Source: Oculina patagonica (taxonomy: Eukaryota). From it: a DNA stretch of 64,000 bases. Of the stretch, positions 13,608-37,182 are shown piece by piece; positions within the stretch are counted from its first letter, which is position 1; every line of letters starts with the position of its first letter. The stretch spans positions 1,550,001 to 1,614,000 of the forward strand of contig NC_135763.1 of NCBI RefSeq assembly GCF_052425735.1. The letters run 5' to 3'. A program made the translations under genes and the position numbers. A model generated the notes under the pieces. That model was not told the DNA's origin and did not search any database. It worked only from the letters and a program-made list of their open reading frames with translations.

Positions 13608-16600
13608 ATGTTGCTGTATTTTCTTTATCCACATCTTCTTTCATTTATCATCTTTTCTCAAGGCAAGTACCCAATTGATTCGCTCTGTCCCCGTGGGTTG
13701 TACATAAAAAACATCGCTGATGTACTCACAAGCTCGCTTTCAACGCTTATAAAACGGTGCGAAGACATTATTTGTCCGTTTTAGCTTTGAATTCATATCA
13801 CAGATATGTTGTGACATTGTAGCTGTCACTCAAAAGCCGTAATATCACTGATTTTACCCCAAAATATGTTAGACATTTTTTTTATTTTGACTCTATTTTG
13901 CATGATATTAGGGCCTGTTTACATGGAAGGCGGGTGCCCCGGCTAACCGAGTTACCCGGCTAACCGAGCTACCCTGGGCGAGCCAACTTTTCATACGTTT
14001 CTTAAGAAAACGTACTGAAGCCTTTACATGCTAGAAGGGTAACCCGCCTTGCCGGGGCACTCGGTCTACTTGCCCGGGGCACCCTTCTAGGCGGGACAGC
14101 TTTTTGCCATGTAAACGGTTATGACCGAGCTATCCCGGCTTGCCGGGATAAGTTTTCGCACGTGTTTTTGAACTAAATTTGAAGTAAATGGCATAAAATG
14201 TAAAAATTCTGGACCCAAACAGTGCTATTTGATCAAAATTAGTTTTATGACTTTTATCGGTTGTCTGGAAAATATTTCTTTGAGCAACAGCTAATTAAGG
14301 TCGCGCAGGACCCTTGCTCATTAATAAATTCATTAGTCAAATTTCTTGTTGGAGTGCTATCTTGTAAAGCTTTAATTCGCTACATTTTGAATATCGATTC
14401 CTCTAAAATTTAATAAGGATACTCAGGGATGATGGAATTACATCATGATTGTCCTTTTACTGAGAGATGACCGTTGTCTGTGATGTTACAAGCCCTTTAA
14501 AGTTTAACTGAAGATGATGCAATTTTGTGTCCAAGTTTTCAGCTAGCACAGCGCACCAAATTAAATAATTATATAGCTTAGTGATAAATCGTAACTTCTT
14601 TTGTGTTCCCACTAGAACGAAATTTTCGATTTCAAAAACTGCTACAAGTTAATGGCTTCTAAGAGCGTAAAAATGTGAAATCTAAACTTTGAAACATGCT
14701 ATCTTCATTTTGAGAAGGAAATTTAAAAATTCGCTCTAGCCAGAACACAATAGAGTACACCAAGTTTATGTTCCTCGCGAATCCACTCTTGAAATTCTAT
14801 ATCGGCGGAGAAAACTTGGACACAAAATTGAAGGTTTTGAGGCTTCCGAAGACCTTCCGAGTCAATGTTTACAACAACGTGTGATATATTCAAAGCTGTG
14901 AATCTATTTATGATAATTTCCTATGTTCCAGCGCACGTGGCACAAAGCTGAAAACAATAACTAGTAATTACTTGTACAAAAGAGTTTAAAAACAAACATT
15001 CTCATGAATATTTCGTTTGTTGTCGGCTTCAGTCGTCCGGCAGTTCGTGCATACTCTTTAAATAAATACATACTAATGATTGCAAGGGTCCTGCGCGACC
15101 TTAATTCGAAATTTTCGTGGGAATGATTATCCTAATTCACGACACAACAAATTTAATTTCAATTTGACAGCCAAATACTGTTGAATTTCGATTGAATTTC
15201 GCCAAAAATGAACGCAGTAAATTTCTGAGAACTTGCACATCAAATTAAAATAGGTTTGAAGAGGAAAAGCCTTGATTATTCAGTAAAAAGTCATATTTTT
15301 CTTCAATCATTTGGAGCTACAATGTCTTCCCACACCGTGTCACGCTTCAATGACGCTGTCTCATCTCGGGTAGAAGGGCTGTGAATTCTGCATGTAAAGG
15401 CGGGCTAGGTTTCATCCCTTCTAGCCGGGTAACTCGGTTAGCCGGGGCACCCTCCCTCCATGTAAACAGGCCCTTAATGCAAAGTTGCCTTTTATACATG
15501 GAAGGCTGGTGCCCCGGCTAACCGAGCTACCCTGGGCGAGCCAACTTTTCATACGTTTCTTAAGAAAACGTATTGAAGCCTTTACATGCTAGAAGGGTAA
15601 CCCGCCTTGCCGGGGCACTCGGTCTACTTGCCCGGGGCACCCTTCTAGGCGGGATAGCTTTTTGCCATGTAAACGGTTATGCCCGAGCTATCCCGGCTTG
15701 CCGTGATAAGTTTTCGCGCGTGTTTTTAAACTAAATTTGAAGTTAATGGCATAAAATGTAAAAATTCTGGACCCAAACAGTGCTATTTGATCAAAATTAG
15801 TTTTATCGGTCGGCTGGAAATATTTCTTTGAGCAACAGCTAAGTAAATTTCTGAGAACTTGCACATCAAATTAAAATAGGTTTGAAGACGAAAAGCCTTG
15901 ATTTTTTAGTAAAAAGTCATATTTTTCTTCAATCATTTGGAGCTACATTGTTTTCCCACGCCGTGACACGCTTCAATGACGCTGTCTCATCTCGGGTAGA
16001 AGGGTTGTGAATTCTACATGTAAAGGCGGGCTAGGTTTCATTCCTTCTAGCCGGGTAACTCGGTTAGCCGGGGCACCCTCCCTCCATGTAAACAGGCGCT
16101 AAGTACAAAAACTAAAATGTGCATGTTACATGTGAAGCTTGCGTTTACAAAAAGCAAGTCCTTTCTTTGACACATTTCTTTAACATTTTTGTAAAAGACC
16201 AAATTCTTCAGCTTTTACAGACGTTAAACTTTTAGCGAGTTGTCAAATTTTTCATTCTTGTTTAGCCGCGGAGCGCACAGAGGATGCATTCAACATAATC
16301 AACAATGACCTGGATCAGCTAGACTACGATGCCTCAATGAATACAGTTTTCTTTGGTGAGCATGGAACCTGGGGTTCCAAATATATTCCTGACAAGTAAT
16401 TTCAATAAAATTGTACTTTCTATTTTTCATAATTCTCTTTTAAGTAAATTGAACACAGTTAACAATAAATTATATTTTTTATTCGTCTTGCTTTTTGTCG
16501 GCGAAGTTGGTCGTAATAGTCCTGCACATGCGCTTATTGGTAATGTCCAGCGGGATTGCCCAAGTCGCACAGCGGCCCGATTTCGACGTCAGACACCAGT

Positions 16601-18314
16601 CACAAGTAAGCAGACAAGAGTCCAGGGTGTCACGGCCAGACAAGACTGCGATGGAATTCTTTTAGAATGGGATCGACTTCACCTACCGTACAGGTATGGA
16701 ACTTTATTTCCGATGCGTTCTTCGGATGCCAAATTTCTTCCTTGTCTTTTTTCACGTCGCATGTTTAAGTTCTTTAGACGGTTGGTTCTCGTCCTTGCTC
16801 CGAGGGCTTTTCTCCGGGTTCTCCGGTTTTCTTCCCTCCACAAAAGTCAACACCTCTAAATTCCAATTCGATCGGGAATCCCACGGCCACAGGTTTGTTA
16901 GTCGCAAGACTATTACGTGCTACCCTCGTAAAATAAAGACAATTTATTTTATTTTTATTGTATTGAAATCAGTTCGGAGTACTCAGAAATTACTTTTAAA
17001 GTAGCTTGTGTGAAGGTTCACCGGGTTAACGATCGTCATAACCTTGCCGTCACTTGTTTTGTTTTACATTTCAGTCCAAGCGGACGTCCAGTGTACGCAG
17101 AGTTCAAGCACTTTAATATTTATCGAAGCACCTTGTATTTTCACGATGTCTCTGGTATGACCCCTCTCATGTCGGGTAATCAGGAGCCGTCCCTACAGAG
17201 CCCAGCAACTCACAGTTACAAGGACATGTATCCACCTGCTAATGTGGACCTTTACTATGCTGTGACAATAGTCAACGGAAATGGGCAGGAGGAGACGAAA
17301 GTGGACATAAGAAAGGTATGTTCTGAAACTAACACCAGTTGTTGTTTTAAATTTGCTTATTGTAATGTCGTAAACTTCTTTATTCTGTAGCTTATCATCT
17401 ATATTCTTACAACGCCCTTTAGCCTGGATGTTATATATGTGCACTGATTTTGCAATCAAGCCCGTAGGTGTCAATCACTAGTATCAATCACTACACTTAT
17501 CTTTCCGTAGATTTTTAAAGGTTAAAAAAGTATCTTCAATGGTTAAGCTCAGAACTATGCCTTTTTTTCGTTTTTTTTCTTCTGAAAATTAAAACGATAC
17601 CATTCAACAAGATTCATTTAGGAGACCTTTTCTTCATTCTAACGCCACCACGAAGAGAAAGTCAACTTAGAGCTAAGAACCAAACAGATTTAAGAATGAA
17701 CCATTATAAGATTCTACGAACAGTTTAGATTACTTCAGTTTTCTCAGAGACAAGTACATACTAGTTCCTTCTCCATGCCTGTCAAGACCCATCTTCGTGA
17801 TAACCACTCAAATATTTTATTGACGATGTAGATCTGAATTTAAATACGACGTTACAAGTGGATTTAATTCAGGATCTCCCTACAACAGGTCATGTTTATT
17901 GGAACAACAAAAAAATCGAGCCCTCTGTTTAGCGTCGTTCCAGCGGGTTTCGCCTCTAACGCAAGAGTACTTCATCACAGCACGGCGTGGAATCCGCGAC
18001 GGAACGAATACCTGGTCGCGTTTGATTTTGATGTTGATGATGACGGTGTCCCGGATCAGGTAGCGGCTTTGAGAATGGACAACCAAGGAAAACTAGTGAA
18101 CAGAGCGATAGTAAATCTCACTATTCCTACTACGAACAACGCGGGTAAGCTAACTCCTAAAATTACACAAAACGGTTAACAGAGAAAAGGCAATAGCACT
18201 GTATCATTTTATTTTAACTTTTCATGATTCTAGAACAACCTCATATTACATTACAATACATCATCATCATCATCGCCGTCGTCATCATCATCATCATCAT
18301 TATCATCATCATCA

Positions 18315-18357
<43 letters not shown>

Positions 18358-21300
18358 GGTTGTGGGAATTTCAGTAAAAGGAGGAAGAGGCAGATGTACG
18401 GGAGGAGAACCCAGTCGTAAAATCTGTACTTTTTCCTTATTCCTCCTAGGTAACCAAGGTTGGCCGAGTGTTGCATACAACCAACCTGCCGATGAATTCA
18501 TGATCATTTTTCAGTTTCGTAGCGGTGAAATGAAATACTTCTCAAACAAATACGTAATCATTAGCCAGAGGGTGATGAGCTCACAGACAGCAAGGGCAGC
18601 CAGCCCTTCCGTGCTGATAAAGGCCTACGGAAAACTAGGTCCCGGTCAGTGGATCGACGTGACCAGCCCAGTACTAATATTCAATCCTGCCACAGGTAAG
18701 GACGTATCCTTCACATCCATGCACAACCAATACCTGGGGCGTCACGCAACGCTTGTCCTCGCTGGCGTGGTGGGCGAGGCGTTGCGTGACGACTCAAACA
18801 ACCATCATCAGTTCTTTCTTTCTTTCTTTCTTTCTTTCTTTTCCTTTCCTTCGTTCTCTCGTTGTTTCTTTCTTTCTTTCTTCCTTTCTTTGTTCTTCGT
18901 TCTCTCAATCAGAAAATCAAAGTCAAACAAACCTGCTAGGGTGGTTTATTAAATAAAGTTCAATGCTGTTGCACAGGAAGCTTAAACTAGTGTCATGATT
19001 TGGTTTCTTTTCACAAAAATGGAACGTCTCTCTTTTTTGTAGGGGGTTATGTGGCGTCAGTTGTGTTTGCAGAAGACGTGGAAGTGCGTAAAGAAGTAGT
19101 AGGAGTATTTTTCGACTTCAAAGGCAAAGTGCAGTACACTGATGCAGTATGTCACTTTATTAAAGGTGACGGCTACGAACCTAATCTCTTTTACGACTCG
19201 ATGAGAAAAGAAATTTACTTCACGTGTACCGTGGAAAGTCGAGGTGTGAGGACCCTGCACCTTGACTTGAGATCAGGTTTGCATTTATTGGTTATCGACA
19301 AGAGAAACGCCAGCGGCGCGCATGCGTCAAACCTGGACCCTTCTCAGTTGAACTTCATTGGCTACACAAATAAGACGTTTGCGAGGACTCGTGGCTACTA
19401 CAACGAACTTCTCGATCGGTAAGAATTTGCGAGACTGTTTTGTTTTGTTCAGAAAGTGGTAAATGCTGTGCCAAAAATGCAAATGCGTTTTTATTTTAAA
19501 TTGTTTGATGACCTCATTTAATTTAAACTATTTTTTTGGGAATTTTCATCTATGTTTTGATAGAGTTAATTTCTTTTGTAAACTAACGTGAATTTGCAAG
19601 GACCACCGTGACAAAATAGAAGTACCGGATCCTCTCACTGTAGAGGATCTAATCAGCTATAACTAAATAACGAATAAAGAAAAAATTGCAAGGCCGATTG
19701 AACGGTTTGGGACTGTATTGAAATTCCAATATTTCGGAAGGCACGGCCTTCCTTCTTCAGGGTCTTACAAAGAATGACTCTTAAGGTTAAACGTTACAGA
19801 TATAAAATGTGGGAAATACGATACAACGCGTAAATAACAATGGTAGAAAAACAAAAACGTTAAAATTTGAAATTTGAAAGGATAAAGAGACGTTACAACA
19901 TGAAATTAAAAAAGATATAAATATATAATAAGATGCTATAAATGGCACTAAAGACTTGAACACCGTAAGCTAATACTATAATAACAATATGAGTGTAAAT
20001 ATAAACTACGAAATGTCATGCTTCATCCTTTTTATTTAATCCTAAAGGTTCAAGTGTTTGACCTCTTTCAATGAGGTACGCCTCTCTTGCCTTCCGAACA
20101 ACGTCACGGTTAGATCGAATGAGTTCAAGAGGAATGAGTTGCATGTCAGTAGCGTTATGATTGTTACAAAGAAAATGTTCTGATACTGTAGTGGGTTTAG
20201 AGTGGTTAGTTTTTTTGTCAACAGTTCTGCGGTGTTCGTTGAAACGGTCTTTAAGTCTACGTTTGGTTTCCCCTATGTATTGTTTGTGACAACGGTTGCA
20301 CTGTACCATGTAAATAACGTTCTTAGAGTTGCAGTCAATGTGTTGATTAATAAGTCTTAATAATTATAATTAATTATTAATTAATTAATTAATTAATTAA
20401 TTATTAATTAATAATTTTAATAATTTCTTTTGTCCATTTTTGTGATGGCCCGTAATGCTGATCAAAGGCTCTTCGAGTAACCTCATGGTAATTCGATGAA
20501 TGAAGTGTCGACCTTCGCATTTTTGGCTCGTGCTCTCAGGCGTCGTAGCGCTATTCAGTTTTCACCACCAAAATATTTACGTTTGATCCGGCATTTAAAC
20601 AATTGGTGAATTTGTTTTGTGAAAATGTTTCCTTTTTTTTCTTTTTAGCACGGATAGCGTTATTTTTGAGCAGCGGATAAACTTTGAGAGAATAATACGC
20701 CTGAGCACTTCGTGTTTCTCCTCGAATCAAAAAGATGAAAAACGGATGACGTGTCACGAGGTGACGTGACGCGAAACAAAAACGTGCTGTGGATGTGGTG
20801 TTTAAAAACCAAAAAACAACACATGGCGAACGTAATAATTTTTAATTTGTTAAAGCTTAATTTGTTCGTCTGCAACGCAGGCTAACTTAAAATAGGCCCT
20901 TGAATGTTTGCTCGCGTGAATGGGTCATTGATAGGTTTTTTCTTCAAATAAGCGTTCGATAAAGTAACACAATTTCACTTTCCAATAGACTAGCTGTGGA
21001 CAGTCTAACTTTCCAAGGGTTATTGATGGTTCGTGCTCTCAGGCTTCGTAGCGCGATTCTATTTCATTACAAGAATATTTAAGTGTAACCTTTGATCCTT
21101 TTATCATTAGGTAATTTGTTTTGAATATTTTTACTTTTCTGTCAGCAGGTTTAGCGTTATTTTGAGCAGCGAATAAAATTTGAGAGACAGATGCGTGTTT
21201 CTGCTCGACTCAAAAAAATGAAAAACGGATGACGTGACACAATGATGTGACACGAAACAAAAACGTGCATGAATGTGTCCATGAAAGTTGAGTTTACTAA

Positions 21301-24300: not shown

Positions 24301-27300
24301 CCGTGCGAGTATATCGGACGCGAACAAAGCCGGACATAAACAACCTCTTTTGAACAAAGTTTGTATTGGAAGTAGAGCTTTTCTTTACTTTGGGGAAGGT
24401 ACTGGCCATGCAACTCGTGCTTGAACACCACCAGACACCACATAAGCTTGGCCTTTAAACGATTTTTCTAAGATCTTCTAACCTGAAATGTAGCGAACAA
24501 AACCTCAATAGTTCCCGCGGCGATCGTGAACTTCTTTCTTTCGTCTCAATGAATTGCATTGATCCACTTTTTCCCTTAGAGGAAACGGTGAACACTTCTA
24601 TCACTTATCGTGGCATTCAGAACCACAGCAACTCGTAGGTGCAGCGAAAAGAAACACACAGATTGACGAATACGCAAGACTTTTGTAGGAAAACATTGTC
24701 AAAACAAAACACCGAAGCCTCACTAGCCTCGCTTTCATGCAGCTCGATCCAGGTGACGACCGAGTCGTCCGCCATATTTGCATTCGGTGTATTCACTGCG
24801 AATTTTAATTGCGCTCGCGAATTAATCCTCATAGAGAAAAACTTAAATTCTTGCGGAAACTTCAGGCCTTTCGCTCCATTTATATATAGAGTGTATTGCA
24901 TGAATCCTTGGAACCCAGACAGACGAATAGCTACCCAAGCACGCAACACTTAAACAAAGCGAAACACTAGCTTATGCAGACAAGAAGTCTCTCTTACACA
25001 CTCAAAAACCAAAAGCGTCGATTTTTTTTTCACTTAGACTGATCTTGTTCTGGGAAGATACGGAGAACGGCAGACACACTGTAACCACCGCCTCTATTCT
25101 GATTACTCGACAACATTACACAAAATCTCTGAAGCCGTATAGCTGTCTTGCTGAAAAACAAATCAAGATGCCAGTGCCGGTGTATTTTCCTCCAACAAAT
25201 GGCCACTTACTTCTGTGGCAAGAGCAAGGACGATCCGCATGGGTGATAGGAGGAGAACTGCTTCAAGGTTAGGCTAGGGACACTTCGTATTGTTTATGAG
25301 ATTTTGTAATTGAGATAGTAGCACATCGTGCTAGGTAGGGTCTATATCTCATCTTACCGCACCCACATTCGCAACTAGCCAATCAGAAGCGTCGTGCACT
25401 GTCCGAATTCCTGCATTATCAAGTCACTGGTTAATACCTTATCGTGCCTTTTGGTAAGCTTTAGCGACATAACAGGCTCGTGTGGTCTCGACATGGGTAT
25501 GTCGGCTCAATCAAACCCACCTGATGTGCCGACGAAGCGAACCATAAAGGTACGAGTGGGTACAAGTACAGAGTAAATCTCTAGTTTTACCCATCTCCTA
25601 TGGAACGCGCAGTGGTCTCATGGCTAGCGCGTTGGATTCCAGGAACCACAGCAAAATGCTGCCTCCCTCCCTCGCCGCCCCTCTGGAACCCGTGTGTTGT
25701 GGTTTTGACCAAGGTACCTTTATATATTCTCGCATAACCTTTCTCAACCCAGTAGTATAAAAGGGTACTGGCAAATTGTTAGGGCATCCTGCATTGATGC
25801 TAGTCCTGCGTTAGACTAGCATCCCATATTGGTGGATTCGTCTGACGTCATCAAAATTCTAAGATCTAATCTGTTAATCCTACAAAGGTATTCTTTTGAC
25901 ATATTCTAGACATAAACCCCTATGCAAATTTTGGCGAAGATTCTGTGTTTCTTTTAGGGGATAAGGCATGTCTTAGATGAACGTGTTTCTCCACTGTCAC
26001 AAAAACGGATATTTCTATCGAATGTTTTAGTTTTCAGACGTGATAGTAATTTAGAAGTGATATCAGACTTCAACCTAGGAAACAGAGTTTAGTCCGGTCC
26101 AGGTCGGCGCACACCAAGGACGAGTCCCTGCGACTTGTCCTCTGGTGTAACTCTTCAAGGGACTTGTTGCAATGACTAGTCACAGGGACTTTACCCCTCG
26201 TCTGTGCCAACCCTAACCTTGCCCCCACTAGTAGCTCTAATTGGCGATAAAACTGAGTATTTGAGTCACTGACTGAAACACTCTTTCCCGAGGTTGTTGT
26301 TAATTGAAATCTTGAAAGGGGGTGATACCCCATTAGGCAAGGCAAGACATTGTTATAAGAAGAATCCTCAAGCATTCAATTCACATTCCGTAATGATTTT
26401 ATACATTTACAGTTGCTAGTCGGTTTTTGATGTTATGTTTTTTCTAAACTTGCCCAATCCACTAAGATTTCCCCACTGATATTTTATTTAACCTTTAAAA
26501 TATGTTCGTCTTTGTACCACCAACGGTTCATTTCAATTCTTAAAATTTCTTGACATTAGGAAATTTGCAGGTTTCTTTTGGCAGAGACCAAACGAAACTT
26601 GCTGCTGTCTACAACAGCCAGCTTCAAAGTGCGTTTGTCACATGGCAAGAAGGTGGCTTGGTTTTCGGGCGTCGCATTGCCATGGCAACGCCACCAGTGT
26701 GTTTTCCGCGCTGTTCGTCTGGAAAAACGTGTGCAATTCTTGACATTTGCGTCTCAGCAACAAGAGGTGATTGGTCAATTTTTCCGTTTTAATTATGTCA
26801 TGACTTTAAATGGGAGGCACGGTGGCCTAATGGTTAGCCGAGTGCGCTGGACTCTGGATCGAGCGATCCGGGCTCGAGCCCTGGCAGGTCACTGTTTTGT
26901 GTTCTTGGGCAAGATACTGTACTCTCATAATTCATCTCCTCATCCAGGTATATAAGTGGTAACCCTGCAATGGACTTGCATTCCATCCTGGGGTGCATAG
27001 AAATACTCCCAGTCGCTCAATGCTACGTCAACCAGGATAAGCTCCCGCCTGATGGGCAACTTGCACCGAACGCAAACTCTACCATGACTTTGCTTGACTT
27101 TGTGTTTTCTGGTTGAATGTCTAATCAGTCGATAGAAAAGGGAACACACGATACAACAAATTATTGTTGTCTGTTTTCTAGATGGTTGTACCATTGCTAA
27201 CGGCGGTTGCAGTCATATGTGCACCTCGCTAAGCCACTGGAAGGTGCAATGTTCATGTCCCAAAACAATGCAGCTAATGGAAGACACGAAAACTTGTCAA

Positions 27301-30300
27301 AAAGGTGAGTATCAGTATCATGTAACGTATGATAAAAATTAGCACATGTTGCTTCAAATTCTCACGTTTTATTGGATAACACCCAGCACTTTCTAAATGT
27401 AATACTGTGCTGACTAGGTTCATGATAACTACCTAATTTTATTTCCCTATGGCCTGATGATATCTAGGCTGTTTTAATATAACAGCTCAGATAACACAAC
27501 TGAAACCATCTCATCACTCACTGCCATCATATCAATGCTCCGTGGTGGCAGCCATTTGGAAGGGTGGGAAAACAAATCAGAAATTACAATGTCTGATATA
27601 GAGTTCCAATGTCTTTCGCAAATCCTCCTAGTCCCACCGTGTCATGGGATGACTCCCATCAAGAGACCATCATCAGGGAAAGACTATGTCTGTTTTAGAG
27701 GAGCTTCAAACAACGGCTGCCCTGCCGACACCTACTGCCATATTGGACCAGCTCGTGAATTTTCCAAATGCTGCCCAGGTAATCACTTATATATAATTTA
27801 ATGTTACCAGAACACTTCCCTGAAATAGTTCAACCTCGTGTCGCCAAACTAGACAATCTATATACGTGGCCAAACATTAAACCATCCTCCTTACTCGCAA
27901 TAACTTTTTGATTATATTTTTGTCCTCATTATAAACAAGCTCCTCTTCCAAGTTATACAGTGATGGTAGCCACGCCTTCATCAGTATGGAAGCTGCTCAT
28001 GAACACACAAACAAGTCCAGCTTCCTTTCGACAACTGCAGATAAACAATCCTGTGATATTTACTGCTTTAGCCTATGACCCAGTAAATAAACGTATCTAC
28101 TGGGGAGATAACTATGCAAATACCATAAACAGGATGACTTTAAATGGCGATGGAGGAGTAGAAATTGTCGTTGGGTGAGTCAAGACTCCATTTTGCATGT
28201 CACATTCAGTATCCGGCCAGCAGCCTTGTACCAAAACATTGTAGGTCTTAAAAAAGCTATGCCACGATATTTGAATTAATAATGTGATGTACAAAGTTGC
28301 ATAGAAGGAATCCTACAATTCCGTGCGTCCTTTGTTATATTTTGACTGAAGACTAGCCTGTTCCAGGCGTTCGATTAGCTGGGCAGCAGCGTTAGAACGG
28401 CGATTGAAAAAAAGACGAGAGTAAGTCGGAGAGACGTTCTTCGCGCTGTAAACCCTGACTAACCCAACGCCTGGAACAGGCTAATTTAGATCCAAAAATA
28501 ACATTTTGTAAGTTGGTGGTTATTTTTTTTTTCCGCCATAGAAGCCCTGAATCTTAACCTCACTAAGATCTTCCTGTGTTGGGTACGTGATGCAAATTAC
28601 TGCCTCGTTTGCCAGACTGTGATCTGAATTTGCTGTTTGAAAGATGTGGGTCATCTGATCCGATCCTTAACGCTTAACCCCACACATAAATGTGGATCAA
28701 AAGGCCCACGTAACATTATTTGTTTCCTAATATAGCAGAGATATCGGCGTCGTAGGAGGTTTAGCAATCGATGCTCAAAGCAACATGCTTTATTGGACGG
28801 ACACATCATTTCGCACCATTGAGCGAACAAACCTGGACGGAAGATACCGCCGAACACTACTTAGTGGCTTGGATAAACCAAAGCATATCGTCCTTTTTAA
28901 ACCGGCAAGGTATGTTTTAGAGAGTAAATGAAGGTATTACAATATTGAATATTGATTGAGGAGATAGCAGAAACATATAGTTTTTGGCTTTTGGCGTGCG
29001 TTTGCGAATGACTAAGAACATAGGAAGTTAGAAACACGTTCACAGCATTATAAGCAGTGCCACATGAAACTACTGCTCAATAGCTTTTTCATTTGAATGG
29101 TCACACACTAGGATTTCATCACCACAGACTTAAACAATAGAACCGCTATAAACAGCATAAACATAAACAACACGATGAACAGCACCACATAAAAGAACTG
29201 CTGCTGAATAGCTTTTATTTGAATGTTGATTGAATGGCCACACACTAGTTTCGTCTTCAGACTTCATCAGTAAATGTCAGAACTACCTTGGACAGCTAAA
29301 TAAACGGCGCCACATGAAATCAGTGCTCAATAGTTTTATTTGAATAGTCACATCGTCACATACATGGTTCTAACCAGAGAGACTTCAGAGTTCCAAAACC
29401 ACTTTTTTACAGCGTATAATAAACAGTACTCATATATAAGTGTCATCACAGTGTTCCATCCACAAACTTAAAATTATACTCAAACTATAATCATGTCTTG
29501 AACTGTGTACATTTTCGTTTAAAGCACTATGCATTACTATTTTCAGATTTTGCTTTAATACTTTTGCTTTATTACAACAAAAAATTATTTTAGGGTAATG
29601 TTCTGGGCCGATGTCGGTGCGGTTGCTAAAATAAAACGAGCCAGTTTAGATGGAAGGAACGAGCGAGCCATTATCTACAAAGCTGTACAGCAGCCGAGCG
29701 GATTAGCTGTTGACGATGCCACATGGAAACTTTACTGGGCTGACGAGGACCTTAATAAGATAGAGAGCTCCGACTTTCTGGTAACATTCCCCACTCCCCT
29801 TCAACCCTGTCTACAAACTACAGAAAAGCCGGCCAGATCGAAATGGGGATAACTTGTAAATTTATTTGGCAACAAATTAATAATCCAGATTTTGATATTC
29901 TTTAAAGATTCTTGACGCAGTAAAACCAGTAAATTTTGTCCTTAAAGTGTTCAAGCATTTTGTACCAAACAGATTAAAAGACGGTACTTAATGGTGTTGA
30001 TGATGCTTCTAAATGACTATAAAATCCAGAAAATTCAAACAAATAAATCACAAATTTTCATTTATTTATTTCAATGAACAGGCAGCAGCTAAATTTCTCT
30101 CCTCATGAAGAAACGGTTGCACAATCGGAGTACAGTCGCAGCTAGATAACACATTCGCACATAAGAATGTTTTAAATATTTTCAGGGTCGGAGGCGTCAA
30201 AAGTTGTACGTTAAACAACCGCATACGCTGGCACTTCTAAACAACAGGTAGGATTCAACACATTATCTGGAATTTGAATATGAATAATACAAGTAAGTGA

Positions 30301-33300
30301 GGGTCCTACGACGGAGAAGTAATCATTAATTCGTGATTTCAAAACTTTATTTTTGGGGATTTGATGTTCTATATGATTAGGCTCAATTTTCGCCGCTCTC
30401 GATCTCTCGAGTCCGATCTTCGTTTTTCCCCGGAACTGATCACGCGCCAGCAGTACGTTCGGGGAAGGAGTGCGGGCTTATTTTCTCGAACAGCGGTCAG
30501 CGGCTGGAAATCGGGCCTATTCCTTTATGTGATTCAACATAACTCAAGAGAAATCAGTTAATGTCTAAGACATCGGTTGAATTTGCCTGCGAATGCGCCT
30601 GCGCCGCAGTGCAGCGCTCTGGGGCGCTTTGGGCGATCGCCCAAGACAGAGAGAGAGAGAGCTCTCTCATTTTTTATCCAGCCCCACTCGTCGCCCAACT
30701 AGGTACGTAGAGTAAAAATAACGCGGAAAACTACGAGCACAAACACTCCAAGTATCCGTGCAGGAAACTGATAAAACAGCTTATTTGAAGTCTTTTTAGT
30801 TGGGTAGAAGATAGGCATTGTAAGAGTCTTGCACAACTGTGTGCATCATATTGATTCCTAGGACGAGTTAATTTTCAATTTTGACTTGTTTTTGGTTTAG
30901 ACTGTTCTGGAGTGACAAGCAAACGGACACTATCCACTCAGTTAATAAACTCACTGGCAAAGACAGGCTGACTGTTATCGAAGGCTTGACAAGTGTGATA
31001 GAGATCATTGTGTTCAAATCACCACGTCCAGGTTAGGGATTGATCTCGAACTGAAGATTGTTCTCCAAGCCTGTCTCATTGTCGGGTGTAACTAATGGCG
31101 TCGTTGCTTTTTTATCGCCGTTTTGTAGGCTGAATTTCAGCCGTCGTTTTGTAGGCTGAATTTCAGCCGTCTTCTCTGATTCGGTCGCTTACTCACGGGA
31201 GTAGGCGCGAACCAGATAAGACGGCTAAAATTCAGGCTGGTTTAAATAGTAGTGATTATCCTCCTTATTTGGTTTTTAGAAGATATAAGAAAATTAAGCA
31301 AAACCCATTCCAAATTTATGATGGTTATTAGGTGGTACTAGGTCCAAACTAAACTACGAGTACTCTATCAGTTTTTTCAGGGTCCGTCGAGTGGCAAAAC
31401 ACTGGAGCGCACGGAAATATCTCTTCGCACTTGGAGTCCACGGGCCATTTTTTTTTTCGTGCGTTGCATCTCCTCCTGCGAAGTAATTCTTTTACACGTG
31501 GTCGCGTGCTTGCTCACTCAACTGGCCCTGAGACGACGACTATACTCGTACTCTAGGTCTAAGCCACCCTGCGAGCAGAGCCGCTCATTCAGATTTTAAG
31601 AAAGGCTCTGCTAGTAGTGCGAGTCCAACTTGACGACGTCATGAAGGTAAAGGCAATGTTCAAGAAAAAGTATCATTTTAAATAAGTCAGTTAACGTTCT
31701 GTTACTAACAACTGCACCAAATTCCCGAGACGAAATTCACTGGTTTATTTTGCTCATAGTTGTACATTGCCGGGATCCAGGAGGGCCTGATTATGGGCGG
31801 CGAGATCCAAATCCCCGTCCAGATGATGGTGACAAATATCCCCAGGGTTCTGTGATAAACTACGAATGTTTAAATCAGTTTCGTCTGCACGGCCCTGTTA
31901 CTCGCAAGTGTCTGCAGAATGGAAGCTGGAGTGGAAATGCTCCCGAATGCTTTCGTAAGTAATTTTTAAAGGATCTGTAGATCCGATATCTGCAAATTTT
32001 CTCTTGATCGTAATGTGTATAGCCTGCGAGAGCAGACGCATTTCCGGCCGTCGCTTCTCTCCGCCGAAAAATAGCGTCTGCGAAACCGAGCCAGGAAACG
32101 ATTTCTGTGACGTCGCATCTTTTGTTTTCTCTTTGGCCAATTAGATTACGCGATAGAATAAAACACGAGTGCACACCACGCGGCTCCCTCGCGACAAAGC
32201 TGTTACGAGCTGTCTGCGAGATGCTATGGCAATTTTTCTGAAACATCGAAGGTTTCTTACCCCGGTGAAAGTAGTTCTTTGCAGAATAACATTTTCAGTT
32301 GCAAAGGAGGTTAATGTATGTCCTTTTTGTCAGTAGATAGGTAATAAATTCTAGCAACACACCGGACGCGACAATCGACCAGGTGAGTTTCATCTTCACC
32401 TTTCGAGAAATTACACAAAAAATTTCCGACAAGCGTCATTGCAAGGCCTGCGAGTTCTAAACCCTGAAGCGTTCTTAGCGTCCTTCTTTGCACCACGAAG
32501 ACTCAAAAGTTTGTCCCAAAGAATAAAAACCAAGAAAACTTTCGCAGATTTCAGCGATAGCTAAAGTTATGTTTACATCTTGACTCGCTGCGTAAAGGCG
32601 AATCTCAGAGAGTCGCTCGAAAGATTCGTCTCTTTCGGAAGAGACAGTACACTGAAATTACAACTCTGACCAATAATAGTATTGCTTTTATTTGGTATCT
32701 TCATCTTAGTTTCAGTTCAGGGCAGTTTTGTCTAGGAGTAAAGTTACTTGTTACAGCAAGTAAATTTTATGATTTTACCGCAATTGACCCCAAAACACCG
32801 GAACTTGGCTCGATTTCTGTCGCTCTCTTGGAAACTGCCGGCTACACGGTTCCGGTTGATCATACATTTTCCTAAAATTTCTAATCGATTTTATGACTTG
32901 TTTTGAAATCCCTGGTGACAGTATATACAATAAAATAAACTTACCAACAAAACAAGTAACATGTACATGTGGTTCGTCAACAACGACTGCTGCTACCGAA
33001 TATTTATCTCACCTATCTGAGACTCTGGTGATCCATACACGATCAAATAGCGGCTATTTTCAATATTTCTTTTCTCGGCTTCCAATGTACTGTGTGTTAT
33101 TCAGCACTATTGCATTTAGGTCAAGCGATGATAATAGGCTGACCTGGTCCTTCATTGTCTTCATTCAACTTACAAGCGGCGGAAAGACGATCACAATAGT
33201 GTACAAAATATTCCTCTCAGGCAATGCTTAGAAAATTGCTGATGTCCCAAATCCATTCTAAAGATTCGTGAGTACGTCTCCCACTTCCAATTAAAGCATT

Positions 33301-34506
33301 AAACTGAAACACTTTGCAAGACGTTCCTCATCGCGTAGTGTCCACTTCGTTTGCCATTGTTTTTTCCACGCGATTGTGTGACGGCTCACAGGCTACACGC
33401 GTGGCACCTCTTCGGATATGCAAGGTAAATTTTCATTGGTTACCTCGAACTGACGTCACAGAAATCGTTTCCTGGCTCGGTTTCGCAGACGCTATTTTTC
33501 GGCGGAGAGAAGCGACGGCCGGAAATGCGTCTGCTCTCGCAGGCTATAATGTGTAAGACTACCTTTGTGGTATTGATTAGCAGAGAGGAGATTCTTTTCC
33601 TGTTTAATACCTTCCGACCCCTTTCTTAAATTTTTTCGTCTCTTCGTGTTATTATTTCTTATGTAAAATATTACGCAATGCGAAATTTTTCCCACTTTCA
33701 CCCGGTTCCCGCCACCTTGGAAATGCAGCTTCCCGCTTTCTCTCCCGCCTCACGTAAAATTATGCGCCTTGTTTACTTCTGCAACTTTGTGGAATCAACA
33801 GGAGAACTTTAAATGATATACAGTTCAAACGAACGGTGTTAGAAAATATATGTCTGTGGCCTCACAAAAAAATCATTAACTACTTCATGTGAAAATACGA
33901 AATGTAACGCGAGCGTGGGACAAAGAAAAATTCTGAGTCCCTAACGGGAATCGAACCCATGGCCTCCCAGATACCGGTTGGGCGCTCTAACCAACTGAGC
34001 TAGGAGAGACCGTGGTGAGCTGGGCCATTTACTAGGTTCAGTTGATGGCATCCAAGGTATGATCCAAAGCATTTTAACAGGTCAGATAATCACTTCTTGA
34101 TTAATTAATCATGATAATTATTTTAGCTCCACCACGTTTTCGTGAGACGCCAGTGAACATGACGGTCCAGGACGGTCAAAGCGTGCTATTAAGATGTTCT
34201 GCTGTGTCTTCAACCATCACGTGGTCAAAGGACGGTGAGGTCATTCGTGGGGGAAACTTTGCTTACTTGACATCTGGTCTGCTGATTCTAAAAGCTTATC
34301 GAGATGACATTGGCTGGTACGTTTGTAATGCTACCAATCGAGGAGGAAGCAAAGTAGCTCGCGCTTATCTGCGCGTATTGAGACCTCGCGAAGCAGGTAA
34401 ATTTAAAACAATTACTTTTCACCACTGTCTAGCTCTTACCGCCGACCGGTTAGCTCAGTGGTAGAGCGCCGGACTGTCGTGCGGGAGGTCTCGGGTTCGA
34501 CTCCCA

Positions 34507-34547
<41 letters not shown>

Positions 34548-34688
34548 TGTGCTGCCTTTGTAATTACATCTGCAAATGGTTAGACATTCTAGTCTTCTCG
34601 GATAAGGACGATAAACCGTAGGCCCCGTCTCCTGCATCTTCAGTGTTATAATCAGCAGGGGACGTTAAAGAACCCACACACTCATCGC

Positions 34689-34725
<37 letters not shown>

Positions 34726-37182
34726 TTCTATTCCATGGGTTGGGTGATGGGGTGAGATCATACACATGGACAGATAGCGGCTGCCATAGGCGCCTTATAT
34801 GCTGATGTCCGGTCTCATCCCATAAAATTCAAATTGTGAAGCGCATTGATCATGGGCTTTGTAAATGCGCTATCAGATAAGCATCCATATCATCATCAGC
34901 ACGTCGCGGATCGACTACACTCTTTTTTTTTTTATAAGAATACAGTTTTTCCGACCCAGGCTGAATATTCTTATTTTCTGCCGATTTTAGGCTGAAATAT
35001 TCTTATGAACATTCTTAGAAAATACCGTTTGACATTTACGTTTTAGCAAGTATTGGGTAATCAATTACAAGTTTTTGGTGTCCAGATCTGTGTCGTGTTA
35101 CATCAGTTGTGAACATGTACCATTGCTTTTCGTTTCAGCCTGGCCGTTTTGGCTTTAAACAAAGCATTCCTCACATAGATAAAGTGACGGAAATGAAAAT
35201 ACCTGATTTTGTTTCAATTAAAAACTATATTCTTTTCAAAATCTCAGACTCGGGTTTATTCTTAAAATATTCTTAAAAATTCGCAAATTTCAGCCTCGAT
35301 ATTCTTATAAACTAGATTCTTACAAAAAAAAAAGAGTGTATACCAGCACTTTCCCCGAACGATAGAACTCGAGGGTTTACTCCAATACTTAAGAGTTCTC
35401 GCTAACTCCCTGGGGAAATGTTTGTAAACATAAGATAATCGTTTTCTACATACCTCGGAAAAGTATAGGAATACGATTATCCTTAGGATCTTGTCGTTGT
35501 TGTTTTTGTTGTTGGTGGTGGTGGTAGGGAGGACTAAAATACTTTACTTTAAAGCTGATTGTTCAACGGCAAAGTCCTTTATTTATTATCATAATTTAAT
35601 ACAAAACATCAAAAAATTAAAAAGGGGAAAAAAACGTGAATAAAAATATAGTTTTCAAACAGCAGTTGCCAAATACTAAGTGGGCAGCATATTTCACTCA
35701 AGAAGAATTTCTTAAGTTTGTTTTGTGGATATTTTTTTTAGTATGTGGAAAAACAGCTGTGGCAACTCGTGGTAAAATAGTTGGCGGTGAGGGTGTTTTC
35801 GTTGCGGGATCGCATCCTTGGCAAGTTATGCTGTGGAGCAAACGAGAAAAAAGACATTTTTGTGGCGGATCTCTTGTAGCTAAGAGCTGGGTAGTGACAG
35901 CAGCACACTGCGTCACTGGTAATAATGATTTATAACGTTAACCCTTTTTAGTAAGAAACACAATGCCGCCGCAAACATATTTTGATATACATACATTAGC
36001 AAGAAAACAGAAATGTGGTGCAAATTATAAGAGCGTAACAGTGAACTGTGATGATTGATTTCTTTCCTGCCTCTGGGCTTTAGTGAAAACAAAAACTAAA
36101 CGACTACCTTTACTAAATGAGCAAACATGCAAACAGGGTAGATTTTCTGCAGCCAATTGAAAAAAACGGGGAATGACATTTGGTGAATGGCATATGCCAT
36201 TTACGTTAATCTCAATCAAAGCTCCTTCTCCATCTCATGCAGAAGGGATATGTTTTTTTCTTCCATTATTAAATACTAGAATTTCTTTCAAAAGATTGTT
36301 TTCTGATTATGTTTGTGCGAGACGCGGTGGCGCAAAGGTTAGTACCGCTAGGTCTTTACTCCAGATCGAGTTGACTGGGTTTCCGCGCGTGTTTTGCATC
36401 GGTATTGAAGCAAGATACTTTACTCGTAGTGCCTTTCTCCACTCAGGTAAACGGTACTAGTCAACTTACAGGGAAACCTGACAAAAATGCTAACTGGGGT
36501 TGGGTGGGGGGATTGCGGTCCGGCTGAGTGTGCCAGTTGTCACGTAAGAATGACTTTACTATTTTACTGTTTAGGTCGATATTCCATCGGCGATATTGAG
36601 GTTCGCCTTGGCAAACTGTTCACTAACAAACGTGAACGACGCCGTCAACAAACCAGGCTTCCCAACAGAATCAAGATTCATCCCCAGTTCTCCGATGTTA
36701 CTTACGAATCGGATATAGCACTCATCCACCTCAGCAGAGAAGTGATTTACACCAATTATGTCAAACCAATTTGCCTTCCCCACTCGACAAACGACCTCCT
36801 TCAGCCAGGTGCTATCGGTGTCGTAACTGGGTGGGGCAGAAAGGGAAAAGGGAAGAACGTCCGTACCAGATTGCGCAAGGTCAGTTTACCCATCGTGGAT
36901 CAAGCCACGTGTAAAAGATCGCACCCGAAATACCTGGTATCCAACAACATGTTCTGCGCTGGTCACTATAATGGCTCTCGTGATGACGCCTGTGACGGAG
37001 ATTCCGGAGGACCGCTGGCCATCGACAATAGCCTTACAGCGAGGGCTGATGATTACCGCTGGGTGCTCGTAGGCATCGTTTCTTGGGGAGATGGGTGTGG
37101 TGAAGTTGGAAAGTACGGAGTTTATACTCGAGTGTCGAATTTTGTGAGATGGATGAATAGCCACTTGGATGAAGATGACTAA
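13608..37182 (+). CDS. Secreted mosaic trypsin-family serine protease (about 1398 aa): SP, propeptide, FN3-like, beta-propeller, EGF, lustrin-type Cys module, YWTD (LDLR class B) propeller, sushi/CCP, Ig, trypsin domain
   Basis: 20 phase-compatible exons: 13608-13662, 16266-16355, 16507-16693, 17075-17315, 17889-18144, 18450-18695, 19043-19418, 25038-25267, 26560-26766, 27182-27304, 27632-27778, 27940-28174, 28736-28909, 29594-29780, 30186-30247, 30901-31031, 31760-31954, 34127-34396, 35742-35918, 36575-37182 (sum 4197 nt, 1399 codons). Catalytic motifs TAAHC, DIAL, GDSGGP; activation site K-IVGG; repeats YWGD, YWTD, FWAD, YWAD, FWSD. Exons 1-3 are the least certain. Confidence 0.85.
13911..15473. 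mobile_element. PIF/Harbinger-like non-autonomous DNA transposon (3-bp TSD TTA)
   Basis: tta|gggcctgtttacatgg...ccatgtaaacaggccc|tta; TIR of about 50 bp. Confidence 0.8.
14299..15100. mobile_element. Nested TTAA-TSD MITE (Kolobok-like GG..CC termini)
   Basis: ttaa|ggtcgcgcaggacccttgc ... gcaagggtcctgcgcgacc|ttaa: perfect 19-bp TIR. Absent from the adjacent host copy at 15487-16099. Confidence 0.8.
15487..16099. mobile_element. Second, internally deleted copy of the Harbinger-like MITE
   Basis: Near-identical to 13915-14293 joined to 15217-15473, with the junction near 15843. Confidence 0.8.
18258..18358. repeat. (CAT/CGT)n microsatellite, intronic
   Basis: Explains the poly-I and poly-M ORF artefacts. 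A related degenerate tract lies at about 10500-10620. Confidence 0.9.
19690..20358 (-). mobile_element. 5'-truncated Penelope-like retroelement (GIY-YIG endonuclease plus 3'UTR)
   Basis: Minus frame reads CNSKNVIYMVQCNRCHKQYIGETKRRLKDRFNEH...VSEHF...RKAREAYLI...TLEPLGLN, a typical PLE GIY-YIG C-terminus; stop at 20016. Confidence 0.9.
19726..19764 (-). ncRNA. Minimal type I hammerhead ribozyme motif associated with the Penelope element
   Basis: Minus strand GACC-CUGAAGA-A-GGAAGGC-CGU-GCCUUCC-GAAA-UA-UU-GG: conserved core, perfect stem II, palindromic AAUAUU in place of stem III, and a CC/GG stem I. Confidence 0.75.
20528..21270. repeat. Diverged direct repeat, about 250-bp unit at about 500-bp spacing
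   Basis: tcgtgctctcaggc...aaaaacggatgacgtg...gaaacaaaaacgtgc occurs at about 20528-20787 and about 21032-21268. Confidence 0.7.
21906..24793. mobile_element. About 2.9-kb non-autonomous TIR element with nested inverted repeats
   Basis: aatacaccgaatgcaaatatggcgga... inverted at both ends (about 130 bp, diverged). Internal inverted pairs at about 22452-22580 / 23050-23180 and about 24060-24185 / 24465-24590. Confidence 0.65.
26812..27090 (+). mobile_element. tRNA-derived SINE (related copies near 25605, 36325 and, on the minus strand, 56440-56600)
   Basis: gggaggcacggtggcctaatggttag...ccgggctcgagccctggc...tgtgttcttgggcaagatact, a head and core typical of tRNA-SINEs. Confidence 0.7.
29045..29480 (-). 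repeat. Degenerate copies of the satellite seen at 60732-61290
   Basis: ccacatgaaactactgctcaatagctttttcatttgaatggtcacacactagg is the reverse complement of the satellite unit. Confidence 0.75.
32020..33546. mobile_element. AcademH-like non-autonomous DNA transposon, 9-bp TSD
   Basis: Perfect TIRs of about 95 bp (tagcctgcgagagcagacgc...). TSD taatgtgta at 32011-32019 and 33547-33555. Decayed RecQ-type helicase remnant on the minus strand (IVIVFPPLVS*..MKDQV, IENSRYLIVYGSPE) at about 33020-33205. Confidence 0.8.
33905..34040 (-). mobile_element. tRNA-derived SINE fragment
   Basis: Minus strand tagctcagttggttagagcg...gggttcgattccc followed by the non-tRNA tail gactcagaatttttctttgtccc. Confidence 0.65.
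34438..34890 (+). mobile_element. Full-length tRNA-head SINE with Deu/Nin-like core and L2-like 3' tail
   Basis: A box tagctcagtggtagagcg, B box gggttcgactccc, core ggacgttaaagaaccc...aagagtaggg and tail tgtgaagcgcatt...aatgcgctat. Confidence 0.7.
34919..35338. mobile_element. TA-flanked MITE
   Basis: ta|cactctttttttttttataagaat ... attcttacaaaaaaaaaagagtg|ta, with subterminal inverted ggctgaaat / atttcagcc motifs. Confidence 0.7.

Follow-up and report, generated by a model that had tools for sequence, protein, structure and literature searches.

Cnidarians have complement-like genes, and few of their modular proteases are understood. Among the closest described systems, MASP-1/2, C1r and C1s are secreted modular zymogens in which CCP/Sushi domains stand before an S1 protease that is cut before I-[VI]-G-G, has linked chains and shows Arg/Lys specificity, and horseshoe-crab factor C places microbe-binding N-terminal modules and Sushi domains ahead of an autoactivating S1 protease. 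In cnidarians, trypsin has often been combined with other domains by shuffling (Babonis et al. 2019, PMC6767649), which makes a mosaic protease as such less surprising. Here, we analysed a stretch of 64,000 nucleotides from Oculina patagonica (NCBI RefSeq assembly GCF_052425735.1, contig NC_135763.1, positions 1,550,001 to 1,614,000; hereafter the window), which contains LOC144656754, a locus labelled "uncharacterized protein" by RefSeq. We consider it likely that this locus is one expressed gene encoding a soluble, secreted, multidomain S1 (trypsin) zymogen of 1398 aa that is headed by a propeller and whose full architecture is conserved. The family joins a protease with thrombin as its nearest solved kin to two different propellers, one of them a member of a bacterial repeat family; this bacterial-type propeller, and an architecture conserved in full from anemone to corals, make it worth following.

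Gene model and domain architecture

The window is eukaryotic with a GC content of ~40%, and its plus-strand stop-to-stop open reading frames (ORFs) hold recognisable protein pieces. The RefSeq protein XP_078373114.1 (P0020, 1356 aa) matches the window at ~100% and maps exactly onto 19 coding exons, all with GT-AG introns, at 16337-37182. Exchanging its short first exon for 13608-13662, which has a GC donor, and 16266-16355 gave a plus-strand gene of 20 exons with GT/GC-AG introns that spans 13608-37182 (Table 1) and reads through 4197 nt with 0 internal stops. The original prediction, made from the letters of the window alone, had spliced 20 exons into one chain of about 1398 aa; RefSeq mapping together with the 5′ exon replacement confirms this chain at exactly 1398 aa. 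The prediction had also warned that annotation pipelines may split the gene, which proved half right. RefSeq has a single gene here and only the signal-peptide exon is lost from it, some models of relatives are truncated, and in the GenBank model of the locus (KAL9968619.1, 1543 aa) introns are retained and a BTB-type gene lying upstream (9885-10843, plus strand) is fused on in error.

From its N-terminus, the predicted protein consists of a signal peptide, an RFRR propeptide, an FN3-like sandwich, a seven-bladed non-YWTD propeller, a 4-Cys module and an EGF domain, followed by a Lustrin-Cys module, a YWTD propeller, Sushi, an I-set Ig, a Cys-tethered RGK↓IVGG site (arrows mark cut or splice positions) and a protease with Asp189. 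Pfam recovered EGF/FXa_inhibition (E 6e-10), Ldl_recept_b (at least 3 repeats), Sushi (E 9e-11), I-set (E 3e-12) and Trypsin (E 2.7e-62), the last split over two exons, and PF14625 Lustrin_cystein scored 19-25 bits in the window copy against a cut-off of 27, compared with 28.8-30.7 bits for the Nematostella proteins. In the whole protein, Pfam detected neither Gla nor kringle, CUB, LCCL or lectin domains. The EGF, Lustrin, Sushi, Ig and activation-linker exons are all phase 1-1, a signature of shuffled modules. The Pfam matches, an AlphaFold model and a motif check bear out the domain order first read from the sequence, from signal peptide to a trypsin domain with Asp in its S1 pocket.

The motifs in question are RFRR (aa 73-76), VCGK...RGK↓IVGG, TAAHC, DIALI and DACDGDSGGP. 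As in S1 zymogens, His57, Asp102 and Ser195 lie in TAAHC, DIAL and GDSGGP contexts, the activation cut falls before IVGG, and Cys residues are present in VCGK and PICLP; the VCGK Cys presumably forms a disulfide with the Cys122 equivalent. The codons of Ser195 (TCC) and Ser214 (TCT) are both of the TCN type. Across the family, His57, Asp102, Ser195, Asp189, Gly216, Gly226, the RG[KR]↓I[VI]GG site, the tether Cys and the Cys122 equivalent are conserved, and the R-x-[RK]-R propeptide site is kept in all members. The protease domain has a hydrophilic end (...NSHLDEDD) and no C-terminal transmembrane segment. These features support a predicted zymogen that is secreted with a propeptide, is tethered by Cys, is specific for Arg/Lys and has non-catalytic modules at its N-terminus. 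When the protease was compared with solved structures (PDB), the best 60 matches were all thrombin or prothrombin (best E 1.7e-52); the alignment to thrombins extends into the end of the light chain, and the protein has Tyr225 but a gap where thrombin carries its 60-loop insertion.

Table 1. Exons of LOC144656754 in window coordinates, with their content and support
Exon	Position	Strand	Content and support
1	13608..13662	+	ATG and signal-peptide core MLLYFLYPHLLSFIIFSQ; phase-1 end; GC donor CAAG↓GCAAGT; not in RefSeq model
2	16266..16355	+	Signal-peptidase site SQA↓AE and acidic propeptide AERTEDAFNIINNDLDQLDYD; RefSeq start inside, ATG 16337
3	16507..16693	+	Propeptide end, furin-type RFRR (aa 73-76), FN3-like start; exact RefSeq map, RNA joints both sides
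4	17075..17315	+	FN3-like beta-sandwich (HFNIYRS...LYYAVTIVNGNGQEE); AlphaFold (AF2) model, RNA joints; no Pfam match
5	17889..18144	+	Propeller blade 1 (AWNPRRNEYLVAF); RefSeq map, RNA, AF2 model
6	18450..18695	+	Propeller blades 2-3 (AYNQPADEFMIIF, IISQRV); RefSeq map, RNA
7	19043..19418	+	Propeller blades 3-5; RNA contigs reach exactly 19418, then run on
8	25038..25267	+	Propeller blades 5-6, after 5.6-kb intron; collinear with P0008, P0016, P0020 over ...NELLDR↓LILFWED
9	26560..26766	+	Blade 7 and 4-Cys module (CFPRCSSGKTCAILDIC); RefSeq map
10	27182..27304	+	EGF, phase 1-1; PF14670 FXa_inhibition E 6.2e-10
11	27632..27778	+	Lustrin-type 6-Cys, phase 1-1; PF14625 E 1.7e-5 (exon alone)
12	27940..28174	+	First YWTD propeller blades; RefSeq map
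13	28736..28909	+	YWTD blade (MLYWTD); PF00058; skipped in RefSeq isoform X3
14	29594..29780	+	YWTD blades (MFWAD, LYWAD); PF00058 E 7e-10
15	30186..30247	+	Small YWTD exon; exact RefSeq map
16	30901..31031	+	Last YWTD blade (RLFWSD); PF00058
17	31760..31954	+	Sushi/CCP, phase 1-1; PF00084 E 9e-11
18	34127..34396	+	I-set Ig, phase 1-1; PF07679 E 2.9e-12
19	35742..35918	+	Tether Cys (VCGK), activation site RGK↓IVGG, His57 (TAAHC); PF00089
20	36575..37182	+	Protease remainder: Asp102, Cys122 (PICLP), Asp189, Ser195, Ser214, Tyr225, stop codon; PF00089 E 2.6e-45

RNA contigs were compared over 13450-19449, using three RNA runs from three studies. They show GT..AG joints for introns 16356-16506, 16694-17074, 17316-17888, 18145-18449 and 18696-19042, so that five 5′ introns of the predicted chain, for which RNA junctions had been proposed as a check, are confirmed by spliced contigs. 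Contig matches end exactly at 19418 with hundreds of further letters beyond, as would be seen if the 5.6-kb intron 19419-25037 is spliced out; its acceptor at 25038 rests on collinearity with relatives rather than on an RNA joint. The joint 16354>16506 occurs in runs X1 and X5, with one X1 contig reaching 16282, and run X10 contains repeat DNA only and leaves the gene itself without coverage.

At the 5′ end, the in-frame translation of 16229-16336 is homologous to the end of the orthologues' signal peptide and their acidic propeptide "EDxIxVINxD". A canonical paralogue on contig C11, described below, carries its signal peptide on a separate exon (MKTGTSFLLVFFSSFIVFTY) with a phase-1 end, 1.6 kb upstream of the propeptide exon. 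The exon at 13608-13662 has the same phase as this C11 exon, a similar tail (SSFIVFT vs LSFIIFS) and a consensus GC donor, CAAG↓GCAAGT, and when joined at acceptor 16265/16266 it reads SQA↓AERTED.... In run X5, depths in three bins (4.99, 0.49 and 4.02, with a contig depth of 8.84) fit a contig over 13537-13660, 16264-16354 and 16507-16548, the 2-nt offset from the exon bounds being due to a shared "AG"; the same depth arithmetic recovers a known 73-nt piece of run X1. The junction of exons 1 and 2 is thus inferred on good but indirect evidence from the X5 depth bins, homology and the exon structure of the paralogue. A search of Oculina transcript fragments with P0020:1-330 for the 5′ end returned a single unrelated 201-aa fragment. 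The 20-exon model is better than the RefSeq model at the 5′ end, and its corrected 5′ exon gives the O. patagonica protein back its signal peptide.

We rejected ATG 13591 as the start, although its product (MTQTLRCCC...) weakly resembles the Nematostella signal peptide, as it meets a stop once spliced 13662>16266; in the spliced mRNA this ATG would open a short overlapping upstream ORF. Further observations concern the introns and the surroundings of the gene. Repeats in the first introns (13850-16050 and 16650-17050) have depths of hundreds to thousands in all four runs, with back-joins and skips of the kind that dispersed or tandem repeats produce, and the ORF track has three copies of a '...RVTRLAGAPSLHVN...' unit. 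Simple-sequence runs of ATT/ATC and AAG/GAA type at 18250-18367 (intron 5) and 18805-18898 (intron 6) were skipped as repeats in the read comparison. RefSeq isoform X3 lacks the in-frame 174-nt exon 28736-28909, which would cost the YWTD propeller about one blade. The first exon of the BTB-like gene at 9885-10843 has a second copy, ~90% similar, at 46906-47136, 37 kb downstream.

Family members and paralogues

A search with exon 7 returned only 13 relatives among 1.84 billion representative proteins; word-indexed searches then brought up the family, XP_078373114.1 included. P0016-P0019 and P0056 (1397-1418 aa) have the same Pfam order and lie on Logan contigs (public RNA assemblies) of 4.3-4.5 kb, which hold the full-length ORF and therefore leave no room for introns. 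Named models from Pocillopora damicornis, P. meandrina, P. verrucosa and four Porites species match this length, and the Pfam order of XP_027051192.1, XP_073230186.1 and Nematostella LOC5501890 (1424 aa) is identical to that of the window protein. In total, the full architecture was found in Nematostella, Pocillopora, Porites, Orbicella and a second O. patagonica locus. Identity between the window protein and Pocillopora is 50-64% and even along the chain, so the protease cassette is native and no late addition. As sea anemone and stony corals have the architecture in common, it is ancient. The family appears lineage-restricted, having been found here only in Hexacorallia. The lineage specificity first proposed therefore holds for the family as sampled here but not for its age, the architecture being ancient and the window copy merely a divergent paralogue.

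Several gene models are truncated, namely those of Stylophora, Orbicella and one Nematostella. On the Nematostella contig L004, the 9 kb that follow the truncated model P0008 contain neither YWTD nor protease exons; we rejected the reading of this locus as a short family, since LOC5501890 is full length, and regard it as a truncated model or an alternate assembly. The Stylophora GenBank model is automatically named 'Prothrombin' and the others 'uncharacterized protein', in agreement with the original statement that the domain combination belongs to no named family. Literature searches by accession or locus tag, among lists of coral horizontal gene transfer and for 'prothrombin' in corals returned nothing specific to the family. 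The sequences are public yet uncharacterised, and the finding of a bacterial-type propeller is new here. For this family of ~1400 aa, conserved over Hexacorallia, we found neither a function nor a curated name, and its models are often truncated, mis-fused or automatically named "Prothrombin".

O. patagonica has two paralogues on contig C11, which stand head to head ~22 kb apart. One (22516162-22543182, minus strand) is full length, with 17 of 17 exon pieces collinear and 39-66% identical to the window, and is orthologous to the Orbicella and Pocillopora genes. The other (22565223-22583172, plus strand) breaks off behind its YWTD propeller, and the following 27 kb hold none of the Sushi, Ig or protease exons. 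In a maximum-likelihood tree, the full-length C11 copy groups with Orbicella, Pocillopora and Stylophora on a branch of 0.15, and the window copy (0.72) and the protease-less C11 copy (0.67) are both long-branched, with their placement unresolved. The window copy is therefore a fast-evolving paralogue of the canonical C11 gene.

Partial copies occur elsewhere in the genome. Contig C3 has three cassettes of Ig, linker and protease only (4694018-4697140, 4751164-4758716 and 4854292-4857382), which are 72-89% identical to the window. The similarity continues through introns and 3′ untranslated region and begins at ~34097, some 30 nt ahead of the Ig exon; in the first cassette, the last exon has a frameshift. 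A protease-only relative with two exons and 53-61% identity lies on contig C1 (44366843-44368929, minus strand), with no other modules within 40 kb upstream.

The N-terminal propeller

The region at 16.3-26.8 kb had no Pfam match, whether searched by exon piece or as P0020:140-600. An AlphaFold model of the N-terminal half, built on 18 family sequences, is all-beta, with a sandwich followed by a seven-bladed propeller (mean pLDDT 79.5, pTM 0.78), and the sequence itself has seven repeats of [AV][YW]N-x4-E[YF]LV-x-[WF]. They resemble the blade motif of the bacterial repeat described below, [AV][YW]N-x4-[EQ][YF]LV-x-[WF] with I-x-[GS]-Q-R-V ~10 residues later. In an exhaustive structural scan, the top matches were bacterial seven-bladed propellers (CylK, Z 32.5; Photorhabdus PLL lectin, Z 28.1; YncE, Z 27.4), and generic WD40 propellers reached Z 24-25. 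The nearest AFDB entries, which are displayed without their organism, have uncharacterised or bacterial-type names. Of the 10 rows listed from the ESM Atlas, 8 are bacterial, 1 archaeal and 1 viral, with Chloroflexota and Planctomycetota clusters on top (TM 0.78, rmsd 3.3 over 390 residues); a feature search of the same atlas gave scores of at most 0.81, which is chance level. The sequence contains no Asp-box motifs of sialidase propellers.

We then scanned prokaryotic genomes with a degenerate DNA pattern for the AYN...EYLVVW motif. The blade motif AYNxxxxEYLVVW matched at least 120 bacterial contigs, where a rough estimate would expect ~3, and many of the bacterial ORFs have 4-13 motif copies each at blade spacing. 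The repeat, PaVAYNxxxNEYLVVW...eIyGQRv (loci L023-L142), occurs in large proteins of Chloroflexota, Planctomycetota, Acidobacteriota and others. No Pfam model covers it, and some of the ORFs also have SLH or TSP3 domains, from which we take them to be surface proteins. An hhalign comparison of the coral and bacterial propellers gave a probability of 97.4% (E 1.4e-11, 177-287 columns), and the alignment takes in the second block, I-x-GQRV against IISQRV; as controls, the coral and bacterial profiles each scored <1% against the coral YWTD propeller. The bacterial ORFs had been chosen by motif, which biases this test, although the alignment reaches well past the motif. A hidden Markov model of the FN3-like part had no match among the bacterial ORFs, so that only the propeller, and not the FN3-like part, is tied to bacteria by sequence.

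Taken together, homology of the propeller to an unnamed bacterial cell-surface repeat is well supported at the level of profiles and predicted folds. Horizontal transfer is one possible explanation. More tentatively, and with more doubt than confidence, we suggest that the FN3-like and seven-blade cassette as a whole is bacterial, that it was captured by an ancestor of anemones and stony corals, intronised and exon-shuffled onto EGF, YWTD, Sushi, Ig and a thrombin-like protease, and that its divergent paralogues evolve fast like an immune recognition family. If true, this would be an animal sensor protease with a bacterial surface-protein domain as its ligand-binding head. The bacterial repeat is a large family without a Pfam model and merits one.

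Function and comparison with known systems

By analogy with established protease biochemistry, the signal peptide would be removed after SQA, and a furin-type convertase would cut after RFRR to free an acidic propeptide of ~55 aa. The zymogen would be inactive until cut at RGK↓IVGG, and the active protease would then stay disulfide-linked to the N-terminal modules, through the VCGK Cys and the Cys122 equivalent, and, judging by Asp189, cleave after Arg/Lys. This specificity matches the activation site of the protein itself, so that family members might activate themselves or one another. Ligands are most likely bound by a head made up of the FN3-like domain and the seven-bladed propeller, and the EGF, Lustrin-Cys, YWTD, Sushi and Ig domains may act as spacers or interaction modules. 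Of the sensor-protease zymogen first proposed, a secreted, tethered zymogen with recognition-type modules stands on the motifs and Pfam matches, but the features of MASP, C1r/s and factor C are missing.

What such a protease might do can be weighed from several sides. One reading, a hypothesis by analogy that we think rather unlikely, is a pattern-recognition protease whose N-terminal modules would bind non-self or damaged surfaces and which would autoactivate and start an immune or clotting-like cascade, as MASP, C1r and factor C do. The layout of recognition modules, Sushi and protease, the activation site that suits the protein's own specificity, the nearness of the protease to thrombin with its Tyr225 and the fast evolution of the window copy are consistent with such a role. 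Bacterial fucose-binding lectins of the PLL type are among the propeller's structural neighbours (Z 26-28), but generic WD40 propellers score nearly as high, which makes the lectin likeness weak and counts against a cascade initiator. Nematostella has a single trypsin-Lustrin_cystein protein, NVJ_164017, which appears under adult metacells C12, C22, C26, C30 and C31 and gastrodermal C7, C9 and C14, and in no gland, neural or cnidocyte cluster (PMC6767649, Additional file 4); its clusters overlap those of NVJ_204186, a factor-B-like trypsin-Sushi-VWA gene found in C22, C30, C31 and gastrodermal C7 (PMC6767649). This co-listing is the sole, circumstantial hint of an immune role. It presupposes that NVJ_164017 is LOC5501890, the anemone family member, which is probable but follows solely from the unique domain pair. 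Against this reading, the protein also lacks what defines MASP, C1r and factor C. Should microbial or glycan ligands bind to the head, the protein would represent a new way of coupling a recognition module to a protease, and perhaps a bacterial domain recruited into animal humoral defence. Alternatively, the protein could be an extracellular-matrix, developmental or morphogen-processing protease in which EGF, YWTD, Sushi and Ig dock to matrix or receptor ligands and non-self recognition plays no part, a role about which we are similarly doubtful. LDLR, LRP and Sevenless-type receptors classically handle their ligands through EGF-YWTD units, the top Foldseek PDB match was Sevenless owing to its FN3 domains and propellers, cnidarian trypsins diversify continuously by domain shuffling for many tissue roles (PMC6767649), and retention of the family since the anemone-coral split suits a housekeeping function. 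However, the literature by accession gave no expression or proteome link to matrix or skeleton, and a role with fast turnover accounts better for the divergent paralogues and the partial duplicates.

Several points weigh against a functional secreted zymogen. The RefSeq start at ATG 16337 (MNTVFF...) yields no signal peptide, the junction 13662>16266 is absent from the listed RNA joints and has a donor of the rare GC type, and the proposed start is preceded by an out-of-frame ATG 17 nt upstream, at 13591. Of the 18 best-supported differences between the window and transcripts of close relatives, 11 are non-synonymous (rough dN/dS ~0.5), so constraint on the window copy may be relaxed. In addition, the processing, activation, specificity and ligand binding proposed above are drawn from sequence and general biochemistry. 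The window copy might on these grounds be a duplicate of the canonical C11 gene that is decaying or without function, still transcribed but no longer properly secreted. The 11 non-synonymous differences and the GC donor with its upstream ATG would fit this, as would the long branch, the loss of the ancestral contiguous start (no ATG lies between the stop at 16181 and 16337) and an extra unpaired Cys in the propeptide, which brings the total to 35. We nevertheless find decay improbable, because the 4.2-kb ORF is fully open, the catalytic, disulfide and processing residues are all intact, spliced RNA occurs in three independent studies, and the canonical paralogue also has a separate signal-peptide exon. 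Finally, two adjacent genes, one for a propeller/YWTD protein and one for Sushi, Ig and protease, could have been wrongly merged. The protease-less relatives (the C11 copy at 22565223-22583172 and the truncated models P0008, P0014 and P0015) and the Ig-protease cassettes standing alone on contig C3 would be expected from such a history. Yet transcripts without introns run full length in four other genera, RefSeq models a single gene, the full-length C11 paralogue is collinear, and divergence from Pocillopora is uniform along the chain (50-64%). Two genes, the outcome named at the outset as fatal to a single chain, is thus close to refuted, and we give it hardly any credence. We therefore retain the reading as one propeller-headed secreted zymogen.

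Compared with the known systems, the window protein shares with MASP-1/2, C1r and C1s the properties named at the beginning, but it has no CUB-EGF-CUB and carries a single Sushi and then an Ig where those proteases have two CCPs, and it adds the bacterial-type propeller, the Lustrin-Cys module, the YWTD propeller and a Cys pair at the histidine loop (42-58, FCGG...AAHC). Its likeness to factor C is one of concept only; it lacks the LCCL domain, C-type lectin and five-Sushi array, and kinship is seen in the protease fold only. Prothrombin and thrombin provide the best solved matches, over the protease and light-chain end, and share Tyr225, Asp189 and the 'DAC[DE]GDSGGP' and 'GKYG[VF]YT' blocks, but the window protein has no Gla domain, kringles or 60-loop insertion, and its N-terminal half is wholly different. 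As in LDLR, LRP and Sevenless, an EGF of the FXa_inhibition type (PF14670) adjoins a six-blade YWTD propeller (PF00058), and the combination of FN3 and propeller recalls Sevenless/ROS1; unlike those receptors, the protein has no LDL-A repeats by Pfam, no transmembrane segment and no kinase, and its EGF-YWTD unit is an internal spacer of a protease. The bacterial AYN-EYLVVW-GQR proteins resemble the coral propeller in blade motif, seven-blade fold, profile homology and nearest predicted structures, whereas they are without protease, animal modules and introns, and the coral blades differ more among themselves. The cnidarian mosaic trypsins of the Nematostella 'tryptome' likewise combine trypsin with shuffled single-exon modules (Babonis et al. 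2019, PMC6767649); there, the trypsin-Lustrin_cystein association was called Edwardsiidae-restricted and the N-terminal propeller was undescribed, whereas here the full architecture is found in stony corals as well. Membership in the prothrombin, MASP/C1r/s and factor C groups thus fails on their defining features, but the principle of a tethered modular zymogen is shared with all of them.

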